From: Octopus bimaculoides
Taxonomy: Eukaryota
NCBI RefSeq assembly: GCF_001194135.2
Contig: NC_068992.1
Coordinates: 60,601,126-60,659,057 of the forward strand
DNA length: 57,932 bases
Direction: 5' to 3'
Part shown: positions 1,136-43,330 of the stretch, one piece after another
Layout of the letters: each line of letters opens with the position of its first letter
Numbering within the stretch: position 1 is the stretch's first letter
Notes under the pieces: model-generated
Seen by the model: only the letters and a program-made list of their open reading frames with translations
What the model was told of the DNA's origin: nothing
Database searches by the model: none
Program-made: the position numbers and the translations under genes

Positions 1136-1340
1136 TATAAATATATATACATGTGTGTGCGTGTGCGCGTGCGTGTGCGTGTGGACTACAGTCCCTATAA
1201 ATATAAATGCTTAAAACTCGATACATTTATATATATTGGCGTACACAGCAATATATATATTTATATGCATGTATATATAAATATAAATATATGCATATAT
1301 ATATAATATATACATATATATACGTATATATATATATATA

Positions 1341-1765
1341 TGTGGCTGTGTGGTAAGTAGCTAGCTTACCAACCACATGGTCCCGGGTTCAGTCCCACTG
1401 CGTGGCATCTTGGGCAAGTGTCTTCTACTATGGCCTCGGNNNNNNNNNNGGGCAGACCAAAGCCTTGTGAGTGGATTTGGTAGACGAAAACTGAAAGAAG
1501 CCCGTCGTATATATGTATATATATATATATATGTATGTGTGTGTATATGTTTGTATGTGTGTGTTTGTCCCCCCTATCATCCCTTGACAACCGATGCTGA
1601 TGTGTTTATGTCCCCGTATTCTAGTAGCGGTTCGGCAAAAGAGATCGATAGAATAAGTACTAGGCTCCTAAAGAAAAGTCCTGGGGTCGATTTGCTCGAC
1701 TAAAGGCGGTGCTCCAGCATGGCCACAGTCAAAAGACTGAAACAAGTAAAAGAAAGAATAGAATA
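1341..1765 (+). mobile_element. SINE family B (tRNA-derived head, CORE-like segment, internal microsatellite), near full length
   Basis: A-box-like TGGCTGTGTGG and B-box-like GGTTCAGTCCC. TTGGGCAAGT resembles the MIR/CORE motif. Internal (TA)n/(TG)n at about 1507-1562 and A-rich end. Many other copies in the window. The resemblance to octopus OR-type SINEs is from recall. Confidence 0.85.
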
Positions 1766-3358: not shown

Positions 3359-3411
<53 letters not shown>

Positions 3412-3492
3412 CGTCTGTCTGTCTGTCTGTCTATCCATCTATCTTTCTATTTCTCTGTCTATCTATCTACCTATCTATCTATCTATCTATTT
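3352..3492. repeat. (ATCT)n/(GTCT)n compound microsatellite, left of the LINE
   Basis: Direct reading. The array resumes at 4300-4427 to the right of the LINE. Confidence 0.95.
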
Positions 3493-3498
3493 ACCAAG

Positions 3499-3987
3499 TG
3501 TTATCGAGAAGCTTTACCTGTTCGGGATAACCTCTACAGGCACGGTTTGAGACACACCGGACCAGTTTGCCCGAGATGTGGTCAGAGCGACGAAACCGTT
3601 CTGCACGCACTCGTGCAGTGTCCAACCATTTCGGCCCAGTGGGCTTATGCCGAACGGCTGCTGTCACGTGTGGGACGAATCCGCCTATCGGCCGAGTCTG
3701 TTAATGCAATTTCACCGCCACCTTCCCTCAACCGGGAAGGCAAGGCAGTCTTCATCGTACTGGTGACCATGGCGAAAGAATGTGTGTGGTGGGCTGGGCC
3801 GAAAGGATTAGAGACAAACACTTACCTCTCTGACCAATTGCTCATCAACTTTTTCAAGTATCACTTGAAAAGGAAAGTGAGAATGGAGAGGCAGGTTTTG
3901 TCTCGTGAAAGTTTCAAAAAAAGATGGGCGTATGTAGAAAAGATGGTGCGTGCGAGGGTCGAAACCACTTTGAGCGTGATCCTGTAA
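3499..3987 (+). pseudogene. Truncated LINE ORF2 fragment (162 codons, zinc-knuckle region, no RT catalytic core)
   Basis: Uninterrupted frame that begins exactly at the TSD junction and has no start codon of its own. Corresponds to ORF-track entry 3547..3987. Confidence 0.85.
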
Positions 3988-4297
3988 ATCGAAAAAAGAG
4001 AGAGAGTGAGCACTTTGCTCTCATGTGTTTATTCCCTCCCTGCCTGAGGTTCCGTGGTCTCTTCCGTAGGCTTTTTTTTTTCCACGGATAAACCTAATCT
4101 TGCTCCTTACATTTAAAAAATTTCTTCTGTGATACACGATCCCTTTTGATTGCCTTCCCCCCACCGACCCTTTTGATCGGAATTTTACTTTCTTTTTCTC
4201 CTTTTTTTCCCTTTTTCTTTTTCATTTTCGAAAAGAAAAGTTCTACATTTGTATTTGTCGCCTCTGTGTCCAGCCCTGTGTGGCCAATAAAGAAAGT
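3499..4297 (+). mobile_element. 5'-truncated L1/Tx1-type non-LTR retrotransposon (ORF2 C-terminus plus 3' UTR)
   Basis: Frame open from 3499 to stop at 3987. It reads [16 protein letters not shown]...CPRCGQSDETVLHALVQCP, a CCHC zinc knuckle (zf-RVT type) typical of L1/Tx1 ORF2 ends. T-rich 3' UTR ends ...CCAATAAAGAAAGT. Identical 15-mer TATCTATTTACCAAG at 3484-3498 and 4298-4312 is the TSD. Confidence 0.9.
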
Positions 4298-4335
4298 TAT
4301 CTATTTACCAAGCTATCTATCTATTTATCTGTCTG

Positions 4336-4398
<63 letters not shown>

Positions 4399-5159
4399 GT
4401 CTGCCTGTCTGTCTGTCTGTCTGTCTCTTGTATATATACACATGTATTTTGTTTTAATTTTAAAAATGTATACACTTGCAAAAAGGTTTTTCTTCAATTG
4501 AAAACTAATAATTTTATAAAAGTGTTCAAAACTAGATTAACATTAAGCTTCTTTCCAGTTTACACACTATATATACGTGTGTGTGTGTGNNNNNNNNNNN
4601 NNNNNNNNNNNNNNNNNNNNNNNNNNNNNNNNNNNNNNNNNNNNNNNNNNNNNNNNNNNNNNNNNNNNNNNNNNNNNNNNNNNNNNNNNNNNNNNNNNNN
4701 NNNNNNNNNNNNNNNNNNNNNNNNNNNNNNNNNNNNNNNNNNNNNNNNNNNNNNNNNNNNNNNNNNNNNNNNNNNNNNNNNNNNNNNNNNNNNNNNNNNN
4801 NNNNNNNNNNNNNNNNNNNNNNNNNNNNNNNNNNNNNNNNNNNNNNNNNNNNNNNNNNNNNNNNNNNNNNNNNNNNNNNNNNNNNNNNNNNNNNNNNNNN
4901 NNNNNNNNNNNNNNNNNNNNNNNNNNNNNNNNNNNNNNNNNNNNNNNNNNNNNNNNNNNNNNNNNNNNNNNNNNNNNNNNNNNNNNNNNNNNNNNNNNNN
5001 NNNNNNNNNNNNNNNNNNNNNNNNNNNNNNNNNNNNNNNNNNNNNNNNNNNNNNNNNNNNNNNNNNNNNNNNNNNNNNNNNNNNNNNNNNNNNNGTGTGT
5101 GTGTGTGTGTGTGTGCGTGTGTGTTTCTTATTTTAGTCTTTGAAATGCGGATATGAATG

Positions 5160-5335
5160 ATGCGACACCGCCTCGAAGAATTTGGTCGAGCTAATCAACA
5201 TCAGTACTTCTTGGTAAGTCTGTTCACACTCCAAGGGGCTCACTTTTCCGAGTCCATTAAGTGTTAAGGATGTAAACTAGCCAACACCGGTTGACAAACC
5301 GTGGAGTCACAAACAATAGAAACAGACACACACAC

Positions 5336-5400
<65 letters not shown>

Positions 5401-5565
5401 CAGATATGAATAAATATACCACTTGCATCTTTTCAGTTTCCGTCTTGCAAATCCACTCGTAAAGTTTTAACTGGTCACGGGTTATTCTGGAAGACATCTG
5501 CACAAAGTGCCACGCAATGTGACAGAGCCCACGGTCACATGTTTGGGAAACTAGCTCCTTAACTG
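5160..5565 (-). mobile_element. SINE family B, diverged, with internal (GATA)n
   Basis: GAAGACATCTGCACAAAGTGCCACGCAATG matches the reverse complement of the family B head. 5160-5320 matches the reverse complement of the 3' half of the 1341 copy. Confidence 0.65.
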
Positions 5566-6120
5566 TACAGCTGCAAGTTCACTTACACATTTGTTTCATT
5601 TATATCAGCTTAAAACAAGAAATATATTTTCATGAATGCACTTTATTATCAAGAGTAACAAAATTGGCATTCATAGACAATAGGCATTCATGGACATATG
5701 GATTACAAATTGAATAGAGACATATCATGTTGATTAATATAACCTTTCGTAAGTACAATGTCAATTCTAGACATGTTTTGACTATAAAATTTAGTTTTCT
5801 TCCGTCGGATCTGGTAAGAAAATATTCGAAATTATAAAAGTGGTTGCCGATGAAAACTCTCGTCCTGAAATATGATATAAAGTGACATTCTTCTTATCAA
5901 GTGACCATCAGCAAGAGCAACCATTTACATATGGAGTTGAAGTTTTGAATGCCAAAGCCATCCAGTTCCTATCGATCGCTGCAGGGAAATACATGGCTAC
6001 CTTGCATTACATACTGATTAGCGAGAGTAGCTGGAACAAAGATATGTGGTGGTGAGATGTCAAGTGTGGCTCTGAAGATACAAGATGGGGGACATCTATA
6101 TTTTAATATTTATTTAACGC

Positions 6121-6553
6121 TAAGGCGGCGAGCTGGCAGAAACGTTAGGACGCCGGGCGAAATGCTTAGCGGTATTTCGTCTGTCTTCGTGTTCTGAGTT
6201 CAAATTCCGCCGATGTCGATTTTGTCTTTCATCCTTTCGGGGTCGATAAATTAAGTACCAATTACGCACTGGAGTCGATATAATCGACTTAATACCTTTG
6301 TCTGTCCTTGTTTGTCCCCTCTGTGTTTAGCCCATTGTGGGCAATAAAGAAATAAGAAACGTTAGCACACCAGGCGAAATGTTTAGCGGTATTTCGTCAG
6401 TCTTTATGTTCTGAGTTCAAATTCTGCCGAGGTCGACTTCGCCTTTCGAGATCGATTAAATAAGTACCAGTCACACACTGGCGTTAATGTAATCGACTTA
6501 ATCCCTGTGTTTGTCCATTCTATGTTTTGCTCCCTGTGGGCAATGAAGAAATA
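6121..6553 (+). mobile_element. SINE family A head-to-tail dimer (6121-6355 full, 6354-6553 5'-truncated) with LINE-like tail
   Basis: Head GGCGGCGAGCTGGCAGAAACGTTAG and B-box GAGTTCAAATTCC (6196-6208). Both units end in TGTGGGCAAT(A/G)AAGAAATA. Confidence 0.88.
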
Positions 6554-7000
6554 CATATTTATTTCATTACTATTTTCCACTTGGATACAAAAATATCATG
6601 AAAATATCGCAGACACATACTGCAAAAAAGTCATGATAGAAGACGTTGCGTACAGTATGTTCAAGTCATTATTGTAACGAATGTGATACTAAACGAAAGT
6701 AGATATGGAAACATAATAAATCGAATTAAGATTTAAAGCTCTAGTAGTGACAGGAAAAAGAGACAGAAATCTATATTCATTCGTAAAAGGAACAACTAGG
6801 CTATTGCTGCTCTGTGTGTGCGTGTCGGTTTATGTGTGTGTTTGTTTTTATACATTAAGGTTTGCTTAAGAATTTATATGAATAGTGATTTCATGTTTGT
6901 ATAGAATTTTGTAATTTAATAGAAGATCATTTGTTTGAAAATGAATTTACAGGTTCGTGTAATATATGGCAACGTAAACAATTTTTAAAATATTATTGTT

Positions 7001-7117: not shown

Positions 7118-7440
7118 CGGTTCAACATCGAATAAATGAAATATTAGGAGAAATGGAATAAAACATCTATTCATAAAATTATAAGGAGCTTTATGTTATT
7201 AAATGACTCTAGAAATCTGATGATTCCTTGAAACCGATTACAATTAATAACTGGCATTGATTTGCGCAGTTAAGAGACGCAAAATGAAAATATGAAGTAA
7301 ATTAATTTCTATGTAATAAGCCACAAAAGATTATTAATTTCTATGTTGTATTAAAAGAGAGAAAAGTATATTTTAACAAAAGTTAATGACAATCACCTAA
7401 AATTCATTCCGTCATATATATATACACGCACAAACACACA

Positions 7441-8126
7441 CACACACACACACGCATATGTATGTATGCACAGAAAGAGAGAGAGACAGTGAGTGTGTGT
7501 GTGAGAGAGAGGTAAAAATACATAGATATACATATACATATCNNNNNNNNNNNNNNNNNNTGTATGTATGTATGTATATTATTGCAAAATTAAATAAAAA
7601 GCAAGGGAACAGGAATTAAGAAACGAACTTCATTAGCTTACTGCTGCTTCGGCGCCACGATGCAAAGCATTCAGAGCCGAGTGTTTGTGCATCATCTTAT
7701 GGATTCCTCATATATTGCTTGATTTTTAAAATGACGCATGTATATATACATACATACATACATNNNNNNNNNNACACACACACGCATATGTATGTATGCA
7801 CAGAAAGAGAGAGAGACAGTGAGTGTGTGTGTGAGAGAGAGGTAAAAATACATAGATATACATATACATATCGAGCTATCAATACACACTCAGAATCACA
7901 TACATATATGTATGAATGTATGTATGTATATTATTGCAAAATTAAATAAAAAGCAAGGGAACAGGAATTAAGAAACGAACTTCATTAGCTTACTGCTGCT
8001 TCGGCGCCACGATGCAAAGCATTCAGAGCCGAGTGTTTGTGCATCATCTTATGGATTCCTCATATATTGCTTGATTTTTAAAATGACGCATGTATATATA
8101 CATACATACATATATATATATATATA
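7441..8126. repeat. Near-identical tandem duplication (offset about 352 bp) across a 10-N gap, probably an assembly artefact
   Basis: About 185 bp of non-microsatellite sequence (7576-7760 vs 7927-8110) reads identically in both copies, which are separated by N at 7764-7773. Confidence 0.8.
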
Positions 8127-10826: not shown

Positions 10827-11011
10827 TAAGGCGGCGAGTTGGTAAAATCGTTAACACGCAGAGCAAAATGCTTAGCGGTATTTCGCCCGTCTTTACGCTG
10901 AGAGTTCAAATTCCGCCTTTCATCCTTTTGGGGTCGATAAATTCAGTACCAGCTGCATACTGGGTCAATCTAATCGATTGGCCCCTCCCCCAAAATTTCG
11001 GGACTTGTGTA

Positions 11012-17864: not shown

Positions 17865-18284
17865 CGGTTTCAATTTTGGTACAATGCCAGCAATTTTAGG
17901 AGAGAAGGTAACTTGATTGCATCAATCCCAGAGCTCAACTTGTACTTAATTATCAACTCACAAACGATACGATTTAAAGTTGACCTCGGCGGGATTTGAA
18001 CTATGAGCGTGGAGAGTCGGAAGAAATTTTGCTCAGCATTTTGTCTGCCACGCTAACGACTCTGTTAGTTCATTGTCTGCCTTAACTTGGATTTCAAATT
18101 TTGGCACAAGGCCGACAATTTCGGACGTAAGCGTAAATCAGTTATATCGATCCCAGTGTTGAACTGGTACTTATTTAATTGATCCCGAAATGATGAGAGT
18201 CAAAGTCAGTCCCAGCAGAATTTGAACATCAGAAAGCAAAGACGGACGAAATGCCGCAGAACGATTTTGCCAGCTCGCCACCTT
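17865..18284 (-). mobile_element. Two tandem SINE family A copies (17865-18084, 18089-18284)
   Basis: Each shows AAATTTTGG(T/C)ACAA(T/G)G, (A/G)ATTTGAAC and a head-like end (CTGCCTTA, CTCGCCACCTT), i.e. the reverse complement of family A. Confidence 0.8.
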
Positions 18285-22148: not shown

Positions 22149-22327
22149 GATTTCAAATTTAAGAACAAGTACAGCAATTTCGGGGGGGGGGAATAAGTCA
22201 ATTAGATCGATCACAATGCTCAACTCGTACTTACTTTATCGATCCCGAAAGGAAGAAAAGCAAAGTCAACATAGGCGGAATTTGAACTCAGAACGAAAAG
22301 ACAGACGAAACGCCGCTAAGCATTTTG
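22149..22327 (-). mobile_element. SINE family A, 5'-truncated
   Basis: GGCGGAATTTGAACTCAGAACG...GACGAAACGCCGCTAAGCATTTTG. Confidence 0.8.
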
Positions 22328-26053: not shown

Positions 26054-26241
26054 GATATCAAATTTTGGTACAAGGCCAGAAAGTTTGGGGGAGGGAGTAA
26101 GTGGATTACATCGACCCCAGGGTTCAAATGGTACTCATTTTGTCGAATCCCGAAAGGGTGAAAGGCAATGTCAACCCCGGTAGAATTTTACCTCAAAACG
26201 TAAAGATGGTGTGCTAACGATTCAACCAAGTTACCATCTTA
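26054..26241 (-). mobile_element. SINE family A
   Basis: CAAATTTTGGTACAAGGCCAG...GGGGGAGG...ACATCGACCCCAG...GCTAACGATTC. Confidence 0.8.
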
Positions 26242-35462: not shown

Positions 35463-35671
35463 GTCTTCAAATTTTGGCACAAGTCCAGCTATTTTAAGCA
35501 GAGGAGGTAAATATATTACATTGACCCCAGTGCTCAAACATTGTCTTTTTTATTAACCCTGAAAGAATGAAATGCACGCTCGACCTTCGCAGCATTTCTA
35601 CTTAGAACATGAAGTCAAAAGAAACGCCGCTAAACATTTTGTTTGACAAAGGTTCCGTTATCCTGCCGCCT
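35463..35671 (-). mobile_element. SINE family A
   Basis: CAAATTTTGGCACAAG...GACCCCAGTGCTCAA...GAAACGCCGCTAAACATTTTG...GCCGCCT. Confidence 0.78.
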
Positions 35672-38491: not shown

Positions 38492-38675
38492 AATAATGAT
38501 TTAAAATTTTGGCACAAGGCCAGTAAGTTCAGGCAAGGGTGTGTCAATTAAACGATCCCAGTGCTCAACAGGTACTTATTTTACCGACCCTGAAAGGATG
38601 AAAAGTAAACCCAACTTCAGCGAAACTTGAATGTAGTGACGGACAGCATGCTAAGAATTTTGCCTACTCACCGCC
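38492..38675 (-). mobile_element. SINE family A
   Basis: AAATTTTGGCACAAGGCCAG...CCCAGTGCTCAACAGGTACTTATTTTACCGACCCTGAAAGGATGAAA. Confidence 0.8.
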
Positions 38676-42689: not shown

Positions 42690-43330
42690 GAGCGTTAAGC
42701 TTACAGAATCGTTACCATGCCGGGCAAAATAATTAGCAGCATTGCCTCCATCACTACATTGAGGTCGATTTTATCGACCGAATCCCTTCTCTAAAATTTG
42801 AGACCTTGTGTGCATAGCAGAACGGAATATTACAATTACGTTCTGAGTTCAAATTCTGTCGAGTTAAACTTTGCCTTTCATCCTTTCGGGGTTTTGAGAC
42901 CAATATTTAAAGCGAAAGTTATGGGCGGTCAGCTGGTACAGTTGTTAGCATGCCGCGCAGAATGCCTTATGGAATTTCGTCCGTCATGACTCTGAATTCA
43001 AATTCCACTGACATCAACTTTGCCTTTCGTCCTTTCGGGGTCGATAGAATAATTACCAGTTGAACACTGGGATCGATGTAATCGATTTACATTTTCTCCA
43101 GAAACTGTTAGCCTTGTGCCAAAATTTGAAACCAACATTTATAAAGTGAAAAATCGCTCGACGAGTTTTCGAGTTTTCTACGTTCTGTATTCAGATCTGG
43201 CCTGCATCAAATTTTCCTTTCATCCTTTGGGGGTCGATAAAACAAAGTACCAGTCAAGTACTAGGGATCATGAAATCGACTTACAACTTCCCCTTAGAAA
43301 TACTGGCCTTGTGCCAAAATTAGACACAAA
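42690..43330 (+). mobile_element. Cluster of about four head-to-tail SINE family A copies or fragments
   Basis: Repeated TTCAAATTC/TTCAGATCT, TTTCATCCTTT(C/G)GGGG and GCCTTGTGCCAAAATT. Approximate units are 42690-42815, 42836-42905, 42921-43136 and 43165-43330. Confidence 0.8.

Follow-up and report, generated by a model that had tools for sequence, protein, structure and literature searches.

Pairs of short and long interspersed elements (SINEs and LINEs) that share a 3' tail are typical of the L2, CR1, and RTE clades of LINEs. A survey of 58 tail-sharing SINEs included three with L1 tails, found in maize and Chlamydomonas (PMC3472496), and the L1-clade pairs are those of ZmSINE2 and ZmSINE3 with LINE1-1_ZM and of SINEX-3_CR with L1-1_CR (PMC3472496, PMC3747384). 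The locus presented here is a 57,932-nt stretch of DNA from Octopus bimaculoides (NCBI RefSeq assembly GCF_001194135.2, contig NC_068992.1, positions 60,601,126 to 60,659,057 of the forward strand), called the window below, in which a LINE copy of a family designated fam1 and a SINE belonging to a variant of a family designated SINE-A end in closely similar sequences. The comparisons described below point to a genuine tail-sharing SINE/LINE partnership within an animal L1/Tx1-like group, in which the SINE very probably hijacks the reverse transcriptase (RT) of L1/Tx1-like LINEs.

Other described systems offer partial parallels. In the eel pair UnaSINE1/UnaL2 (L2 clade), both partners end in (TGTAA)n (PMC3747384). 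Crocodilian SINEU was linked to Tx1-Mar through a common target alone and has poly(A) tails (PMC4494074), and the same source, summarizing Kojima and Fujiwara (2004), gives as Tx1-clade targets (TC)n for Kibi, (TTC)n for Koshi, the Tx1D element for Tx1, and U2 genes for Keno. Octopus genomes contain recently active members of the L1/Tx1 group (PMC13282606, PMC8967140), and SINEs make up 11.6% of the Octopus vulgaris assembly (PMC13282606) and approximately 40% of octopus repeat content (PMC8967140). The LINE driving octopus SINEs was not stated in the literature searched, and that literature (with Repbase and Dfam annotations outside the search) yielded no cephalopod description of a SINE/L1-Tx1 tail pairing.

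A LINE and a SINE with similar 3' ends

The features of the two elements and their immediate surroundings in the window are as follows.

3361..3483, no strand: (CTAT)n/(CTGT)n microsatellite 5' of the LINE insertion, by direct reading
3484..3498, + strand: 5' target-site duplication of the LINE copy, TATCTATTTACCAAG, an exact 15-mer repeated at 4298-4312
3499..4297, + strand: 5'-truncated copy of the L1/Tx1-like LINE fam1 (Pfam zf-RVT, E = 1.3e-6, above cut-off)
3499-3987, + strand: C terminus of open reading frame 2 (ORF2) of this copy, with a CCHC zf-RVT motif (stop codon at 3985-3987)
3988-4297, + strand: 3' untranslated region (3' UTR) of this copy
4254..4295, + strand: 3'-terminal 42-mer of the LINE, predicted hairpin plus AATAAAGAAA
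4298..4312, + strand: 3' target-site duplication of the LINE copy, 15 bp, TATCTATTTACCAAG
4313..4427, no strand: (CTAT)n/(CTGT)n microsatellite 3' of the LINE, the usual 3' neighbor of fam1
4590..5094, no strand: assembly gap within a (GT)n run between the LINE and the SINE, part of neither
6106..6115, + strand: 5' target-site duplication of the SINE dimer, ATATTTATTT, repeated at 6555-6564
6116..6354, + strand: unit 1 of the SINE-A variant, with head and body common to other SINE-A copies
6293..6358, + strand: LINE-derived 3' module of unit 1, approximately 66 nt, consisting of TACCTTTGTCTGTCCTTG, the 42-mer (6311-6352), and TAAGAA
6355..6554, + strand: SINE-A unit 2, 5' truncated and beginning AGAAACGTTAGCAC, with its own tail at 6510-6551 (81% identity to unit 1)
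6555..6564, + strand: 3' target-site duplication of the SINE dimer

The ungapped match put forward in a preliminary description of this DNA, between window positions 4254-4295 in the LINE (TTTGTCGCC...AAAGAAA) and 6311-6352 in the SINE, was reproduced at 36 of 42 positions. The probability of at least 36 matches was approximately 9e-16 at a match probability of 0.26 per base (local composition) and approximately 6e-10 after correction for all inter-element offsets, and BLAST inside the window aligned the LINE and SINE 42-mers with an E value of 9.5e-7. The tail also ascribed to the second SINE unit was found at 6510-6551, where it matches unit 1 at 34/42 positions and the LINE at 30/42. Both 42-mers are the outermost 3' ends of their elements, as had been reported, and each lies inside its own element's target-site duplications, which measure 15 bp for the LINE and 10 bp for the SINE dimer; the latter occupies 6116-6554 as a whole, with one duplication pair around it. 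Since each element has its own target-site duplication, the adjacency of the two in the window is coincidental, and it was rejected as a meaningful arrangement. The gap at 4590-5094 breaks no reading frame and alters only the apparent LINE-SINE distance, on which nothing in the comparison depends.

The likeness was borne out when consensus sequences were built and their 3' ends aligned, as the preliminary description had proposed. The fam1 and SINE consensuses agreed without gaps at 37 of 42 positions, and their alignment score of 59 compared with a maximum of 32 in 2,000 shuffles; under strict scoring, the likeness was confined to the 42-mer.

The tail in SINE-A and in related LINE families

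Searches of the genome (2.34 Gb) returned at least 5,031 candidate copies of the fam1 3' region, of which the best 40 scored were 80 to 89% identical. Thirty loci were fetched from these searches, and 12 RT-centered loci (42 in total) and 6 further tails were added. Every fam1 copy reaching its 3' end among the 30 fetched loci had the tail ...TTTGTCCCCTCTGTGTTCAGCCCTGTGTGGCCAATAAAGAAA, with which the RT-centered loci and the additional tails were concordant wherever the 3' end was readable. A 31-mer spanning the fam1 hairpin and terminus had 286 genomic matches at ≤2 mismatches (0 in the reversed-pattern control). In a 34-copy alignment, identity to the consensus was 0.89 to 0.90 over the last 60 nt and 0.67 to 0.78 over the adjacent 120 nt of UTR. 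The 42-mer is thus native to the LINE family and not a fragment appended to one copy; a separate insertion or a SINE fragment on a single LINE copy, the possibility that had been named as fatal to the pairing, is excluded by its presence in all complete fam1 3' ends.

After ...AAAGAAA, almost every fam1 copy continues with GTT, CTT, or CAT and then (ATCT)n, and a (CTAT)n-type repeat lies upstream in about 10 of the 24 copies with a readable 5' junction. The family either targets (ATCT)n or seeds its own target microsatellite; as the repeat is seen at about 40% of 5' junctions only, (ATCT)n may partly be a self-made 3' tail. No target-site duplications were found in fam1 copies lacking an upstream microsatellite, for which the 5' boundaries are approximate. 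Some copies (L063, L072, and L069) stand directly behind the (ATCT)n tail of another copy. A second conserved block occurs in the 3' UTR at window positions 4058-4117 or thereabouts (181 to 240 nt from the 3' end; 0.87 to 0.91 to the consensus) and holds the inverted repeat CCGTGG...CCACGG, from which a 6-bp stem is possible.

The SINE-A variant is a noncoding element of about 240 nt with very high copy number and a modular head, body, and tail. Thirty copies gave a 243-nt consensus with the tail at its end, from which unit 1 in the window differs by 7%. Hairpin and terminus (TAGCCCCTTGTGGGCAATAAAGAAATAAGAA) had 18,129 genomic matches at ≤2 mismatches (0 in the reversed-pattern control), and the best 40 genomic matches to the variant were 97 to 99% identical to the consensus and retained the whole tail. 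The tail is fixed in this SINE subfamily, in at least 18,000 copies. The 3' end reads ...AAAGAAATAAGAA, with the terminus TAAGAA, and nine clear SINE duplications, 10 to 20 bp in length, begin with (A)GAA or TAAGAA.

The window also contains SINE-A copies with the same head and body that end in ...CTGGCCTTGTGCCAAAATTTGAAA, a tail designated tail-1.

42944..43130, + strand: SINE-A copy with tail-1 (...GCCTTGTGCCAAAATTTGAAA), same head and body, different 3' module
near 10827-10977, + strand: further tail-1 SINE-A copy
near 18142-18257, - strand: further tail-1 SINE-A copy
near 22194-22325, - strand: further tail-1 SINE-A copy
near 26092-26199, - strand: further tail-1 SINE-A copy
near 35549-35639, - strand: further tail-1 SINE-A copy
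near 38543-38603, - strand: further tail-1 SINE-A copy
near 43211-43283, + strand: further tail-1 SINE-A copy

Because the same head and body occur with different tails, the variant subfamily must have arisen by a tail swap, and a swap within SINE-A points to transfer from LINE to SINE. No LINE carrying tail-1 was found in 318 kb of sequence, where 14 of 14 matches were SINE copies. A tRNA origin of the SINE head was not confirmed: ARAGORN returned nothing in 6000-6700 and Rfam (E ≤ 1) nothing in 6090-6580, and a B-box-like GAGTTCAAATTCC was recognized in the head by inspection only.

A 5'-truncated SINE-A unit starting with AGAA(A/T)CGTTAGCAC was present immediately 3' of 16 of the 30 variant copies. 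These truncated second units may reflect integration at that site in older copies or a template jump, and AAGAA microhomology would account for them. One locus (L060) retains the old head and the duplication AGAATCGT, as on the route of insertion into an older copy.

The RT of fam1 finds many related families, among which sampled RT segments had 53 to 81% protein identity to the fam1 query, and homologous tails were read in fam2, fam3, fam4, and fam4y, all from this genome. The 3' layout of the four is alike, with a T/C-rich leader ending in CCCCTCT-N-TGT, a short hairpin, and an A-rich end with AATAAA. The end of fam4 is ...CCCTTATGTTTGTCTGTCCTTGTTTGTCCCCTCTCTGTAACGCCTCCAATGGCGAATTTTAATGAAATAAAGAAG. 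Upstream of its 42-mer, the SINE tail reads CCTTTGTCTGTCCTTG, which extends the likeness to fam4; the LINE-derived part of the SINE is therefore a module of approximately 66 nt (6293-6358), with its 5' part exact in fam4, and not the 42 nt originally delimited. Its three parts are a leader rich in pyrimidines (TTTGTCTGTCCTTGTTTGTCCCCTCT), a short hairpin, and an A-rich terminus. The module matched the fam4 tail at 52 of 67 positions, including the 26 identical bases of the leader, and the fam1 tail at 45 of 60, where a gap of 8 nt splits the leader. Fam4 and the SINE also have the terminus GAAATAA(A)GAAG in common.

The two 42-mers have the same predicted fold, in which UCUNUGUU pairs with AAUAAAGA in a lower stem and GCC with GGC, or GCCC with GGGC, in an apical one; the hairpin is predicted to have a 4-bp stem and a loop of 5 to 6 nt. 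All five differences between the consensuses are unpaired or preserve pairing in this fold. Minimum-free-energy folds placed the apical hairpin at the same position in 13 to 14 of 15 LINE and SINE tails from three genomes. Among family representatives, the stems are GCCC/GGGC in the SINE, CGCC/GGCG in fam4, TGCC/GGCA in fam4y, GATC/GATC in fam3, CATC/GGTG in fam2, GGCC/GGCT in Argonauta, and GGC/GCC in tail-1 and the third genome, differences that look like compensatory change. The tail looks functionally constrained, since it is conserved across divergent LINE families and between Octopus-type and Argonauta LINEs, with stems that appear to covary.

A LINE of Argonauta hians with 61% protein identity ends in ...TTCTGTGTCGGCCCTTGTGGCTAATAAAGAAATCTAT (terminal part GGCCCTTGTGGCTAATAAAGAAATCTAT), and only the last 33 nt of its 3' UTR align to the octopus consensus (88%). 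Two Argonauta SINE-A-like copies, located a few kilobases from this LINE, end in ...TTCTGTGTTTGGCCCTTGTGGCTAACAGAGAAATCTAT and ...TGTTCGGCCCTTGTGCCTAATAGAGAAATCTAT (common GGCCCTTGTGGCTAACAGAGAAATCTAT) and bear the Argonauta version of the tail, terminus included. The SINE/LINE tail pairing thus recurs independently in a second genus, where it follows the resident LINE. In a third genome (European Nucleotide Archive accession ERZ21867824, loci L074-L083), intact full-length LINEs encode an ORF1 of 633-647 amino acids and an ORF2 of 1153-1155 amino acids. They end in ...AAGGCCTCGTGCCTT...AAAGAAATAAAG and are found at one repeated flank (TCCAGCC...) or in head-to-tail arrays, and a tRNA-like SINE with a related GGCCTTGTGCC tail occupies the same site as the LINEs (L080). 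Another LINE of the third genome ends in ...TTAGGCCTTGTGCCAAATTTG... and resembles the older SINE-A tail over an 18-19-nt core only, so that its likeness to tail-1 is a lead only.

Protein comparisons bear on the class of these LINEs. The fragment in the window contains the ORF2 C terminus with a CCHC zf-RVT, and longer copies show RVT_1. An octopus N-terminal endonuclease fragment matched Exo_endo_phos (E = 4e-4) and aligned to residues 3-138 of P0139, an intact relative approximately 40% identical whose ORF1 has a zf-CCHC (E = 1e-5). Protein homologues and intact relatives share Exo_endo_phos (PF03372), RVT_1 (PF00078), and zf-RVT (PF13966). Upstream of ORF2 in one octopus copy (L070), an ORF1 remnant has, by inspection, a CX2CX4HX4C CCHC knuckle; a CCHC zinc knuckle in ORF1 is as in Tx1 and plant L1 and unlike mammalian L1. 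P0139 residues 4-863 are colinear with residues 8-880 of human L1 ORF2p, through the linker between endonuclease and RT (E = 6e-74). The same protein matched R2 in the RT only (E = 6e-27) and the L1 endonuclease with an E value of 2e-14, and no R1-clade endonuclease chain was among its structure matches at E ≤ 0.01. The octopus RT scored E = 5e-28 against L1 and 2e-12 against R2. These comparisons are one-sided in that the Protein Data Bank is without CR1, RTE, L2, and Jockey proteins, and the names attached to matching proteins in the sequence databases gave almost no information on clade. Insertion preferences are Tx1-like, fam1 occurring with (ATCT)n and fam4 and fam4y at one site in another SINE (about 20 of 25 copies). 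Domains, the ORF2p alignment, and insertion preferences together form the pattern expected of the L1/Tx1 group, and the membership of the LINE in that group, proposed from the window fragment, is well supported: it is L1-like by domains and alignment and Tx1-like by target preference.

Two observations were made alongside these comparisons. A fish protein of the same architecture, P0216 (27% identity, E = 3e-96; PF23057, PF23058, and zf-CCHC), seems to be an ORF1-ORF2 fusion and may help to connect these LINEs with Tx1-type elements of vertebrates. The longest open frame in any LINE copy, 1,207 amino acids, belongs to one whose 3' region is all N, possibly an assembly gap (L091, G000:C2:16625500-16626900).

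Candidate driver and rival explanations

Insertion sites of the sister families bear on which LINE could mobilize the SINE. About 12 of 15 fam4 copies and 8 of 10 fam4y copies were inserted at GGTAAG(A/T)AG^CTTGCTTACC, with CTTGCTTACCAACCACATGG downstream, in the head of SINE-B, another abundant SINE that has a copy at window positions 1340-1745. The same SINE-B position holds 3 of the 30 SINE-A-variant copies, one of them with the duplication TAAGAAGCTTGCTTCC. At least 306 fam4y candidates were found, 96 to 99% identical to one member, which is comparable to the age of the SINE. At one locus (L113, G000:C5:80096560-80096880), about 85 nt of fam4y 3' UTR are joined to a SINE-type hairpin and terminus, with the junction within the shared 26-nt block; this chimera is inserted in a SINE-B head, with a SINE-A unit behind it. 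Such a product would be expected from a template switch in the 26-nt block. As leader, terminus, target, and age all fit, the fam4 lineage, or an unsampled close relative, appears to be a better driver candidate than fam1.

The explanation that we consider probable is that the 42-mer is the core of the approximately 66-nt module, that a LINE donated this module in replacement of the older SINE-A tail, and that the subfamily is mobilized in trans by a fam4-like driver. In such a mechanism, the ORF2 protein of a LINE of the group would act in trans, recognizing the SINE RNA by its hairpin tail in the manner of stringent recognition. A nick in the DNA would leave a 3' end able to pair with the terminal ...AAGAA of the SINE RNA, and the ORF2 protein would then reverse-transcribe the SINE into the nick. 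AGAA at the start of the duplications would be a consequence of such pairing. The neighboring family fam1 would be a relative of the driver with a homologous tail. From the homology, the LINE-native tail, its conservation, and the target patterns, all of them observed, we infer both recognition in trans and the identity of the driver. The original proposal of mobilization by a tail-stringent L1/Tx1 LINE is therefore retained as to the native tail, its fixation in the SINE, and the L1-like character of the LINE, and abandoned as to the choice of the neighboring fam1 as partner.

Several results weigh against this explanation. The fold energies of the 42-mers are weak and not better than those of shuffles (z = -0.8 and -1.4), and the covariation was read off family representatives and not by a statistical test. 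In the LINEs, AATAAA could owe its conservation to polyadenylation and not to RT recognition; a structural role is favored by the fact that the SINE, with no expected need for such a signal, keeps the motif, and by the pairing predicted between the motif and UCUNUGUU. The fam4 hairpin differs from that of the SINE, and no sampled LINE matches the SINE throughout: fam1 comes nearest in the hairpin, and fam4 in the leader, terminus, and target. A LINE family with the exact SINE hairpin was not found, the best match to a chimeric query being 94%. Ages were compared from the best 40 scored matches per search and not from random samples. A pattern of fam4-type leader plus SINE hairpin had 852 matches, of which nearly all those listed had SINE-type prefixes; among five atypical ones, one was the chimera at L113 and the rest were SINE copies.

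Two leads to a donor were tried and rejected. A query of fam1 upstream sequence plus the SINE tail returned only fam1 copies at ≤94%, none reaching the SINE terminus. The 3' UTR at L113 led to fam4y, which has its own hairpin (TGCC/GGCA) and not that of the SINE.

Mobilization of the SINE subfamily by fam1 itself is unlikely, although the hairpin and AATAAAGAAA are matched best by fam1 (37/42, consensus against consensus), the predicted folds of the two 42-mers agree, and the 15-bp duplication of the window copy lies inside the SINE range of 10 to 20 bp. Contrary to what had been supposed, the neighboring LINE does not share the SINE terminus: fam1 copies end almost always in GTT, CTT, or CAT plus (ATCT)n, often within (ATCT)n, and the SINE ends in TAAGAA. 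ATCT was present at the 3' end of 0 of 30 SINE copies, and the SINE hairpin followed by a fam1 terminus had 4 matches genome-wide against 18,129 for the SINE form (GTTATC in 0 of the 4). The comparison of duplications and targets suggested at the outset gave a divided answer, the length agreeing for the window copy and the motifs, (ATCT)n and AGAA, differing. The suggested age comparison went against fam1, which looks older (86 to 95% identity to consensus against 97 to 99% for the SINE, best 40 matches each), and the 26-nt SINE leader is broken in fam1 by the 8-nt gap.

It is also unlikely that the tail is a relic and that the SINE is moved at present, or has been throughout its history, by RTE, CR1, or Dong-R4 elements or by relaxed recognition of an A-rich end. 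Room for such a history is left by the abundance and recent activity of other LINE clades in octopus genomes (PMC13282606, PMC8967140), and the link between SINE and LINE is one of sequence comparison, a further point to be set against the fam4-like driver. Hairpin and terminus are nevertheless kept at ≤2 mismatches in the 18,129 copies, and the youngest SINE copies retain the whole tail. The duplications begin with AGAA, in agreement with the SINE terminus, the SINE-B insertion site is common to fam4 and the SINE, and the tail covaries with the resident LINE in Argonauta.

A transfer in the reverse direction, or an artifact in which the LINE gained a SINE fragment and the tail is not a LINE feature, is very improbable. 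The chimera at L113 does show recombination between LINE and SINE RNAs, but the tail lies within the duplications of the window LINE copy and is present at every complete fam1 3' end. Tails are also found in families with 53 to 81% RT identity, in Argonauta, and in the approximately 40% identical relative of the third genome, and the SINE-A body occurs with another tail as well. Chance likeness of two AT-rich, low-complexity ends can be dismissed, for even though AATAAAGAAA, in both ends, is a common kind of motif, the offset-corrected P value, the empty reversed-pattern controls, and recurrence across families and genera leave it practically no probability.

The assembly of the window has 20 gaps in 58 kb, mostly in microsatellites ((TA)n, (GT)n, (CTAT)n, and (AAT)n), so that distances and repeat lengths in the region are unreliable. 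Two stretches of about 100 nt are duplicated approximately 340 bp apart around short gaps (7437-7542/7774-7872 and 7561-7650/7916-8000). These repeats at 7437-8000 may have arisen by tandem duplication at the locus or as an artifact of assembly.

Comparison with described SINE/LINE pairs

If animal L1/Tx1-like LINEs share a conserved, apparently covarying hairpin with a SINE present in at least 18,000 copies, stringent recognition would reach animal relatives of L1. Such sharing would bear on whether the relaxed, poly(A)-only recognition of mammalian L1 is derived, and it would give the octopus SINE expansion a definite driver open to testing. A broader reading, possible and offered tentatively, is that an octopod target-specific L1/Tx1-like group uses its 3' hairpin stringently and has repeatedly donated tails to the dominant SINE lineage, tail-1 included. 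The tail-1 hairpin GGC-CTTGT-GCC matches the 3' end of the related LINE in the third genome. If this broader reading were true, the octopus SINE expansion would have been driven by L1/Tx1-type elements and not by RTE or CR1, and stringent recognition would be ancestral in animal L1/Tx1 lineages, as proposed for plants.

The pairs of maize and Chlamydomonas are alike in having an L1-group LINE with a conserved 3' stem-loop (a predicted one in the octopods, where the stem differences look compensatory), the tail on the SINE, and an argument for stringent recognition. They end in poly(A), whereas the octopod LINEs are without poly(A) and lie at preferred targets. The host here is an animal (octopods), and several sister LINE families carry variants of the tail. 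SINEU and Tx1-Mar resemble the octopus case in a Tx1-type partner with a target preference and in a shared insertion target, here the SINE-B site (3 of 30 SINE copies). SINEU differs in its snRNA-derived heads, and its poly(A), and no LINE sharing its 3' end was found; the octopus link is made by tail homology as well.

The targeting of Kibi, Koshi, Tx1, and Keno has its likeness in fam1, many copies of which are flanked by (ATCT)n at either end, in fam4, with one SINE-B site, and in the third-genome relative, found at one repeated site and in tandem arrays. The targets here, (ATCT)n and a SINE head, are new, and the likeness to Tx1 would be one of target and domains. With UnaSINE1/UnaL2 and the stringent pairs of the L2, CR1, and RTE clades, the octopus pair has in common a shared 3' stem-loop, here a predicted one, plus a terminal motif and the swapping of tails between SINE subfamilies. 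It differs from UnaL2/UnaSINE1 in the LINE clade and in that the octopus SINE terminus, TAAGAA, is unlike the (ATCT)n of the neighboring LINE and resembles only that of fam4.

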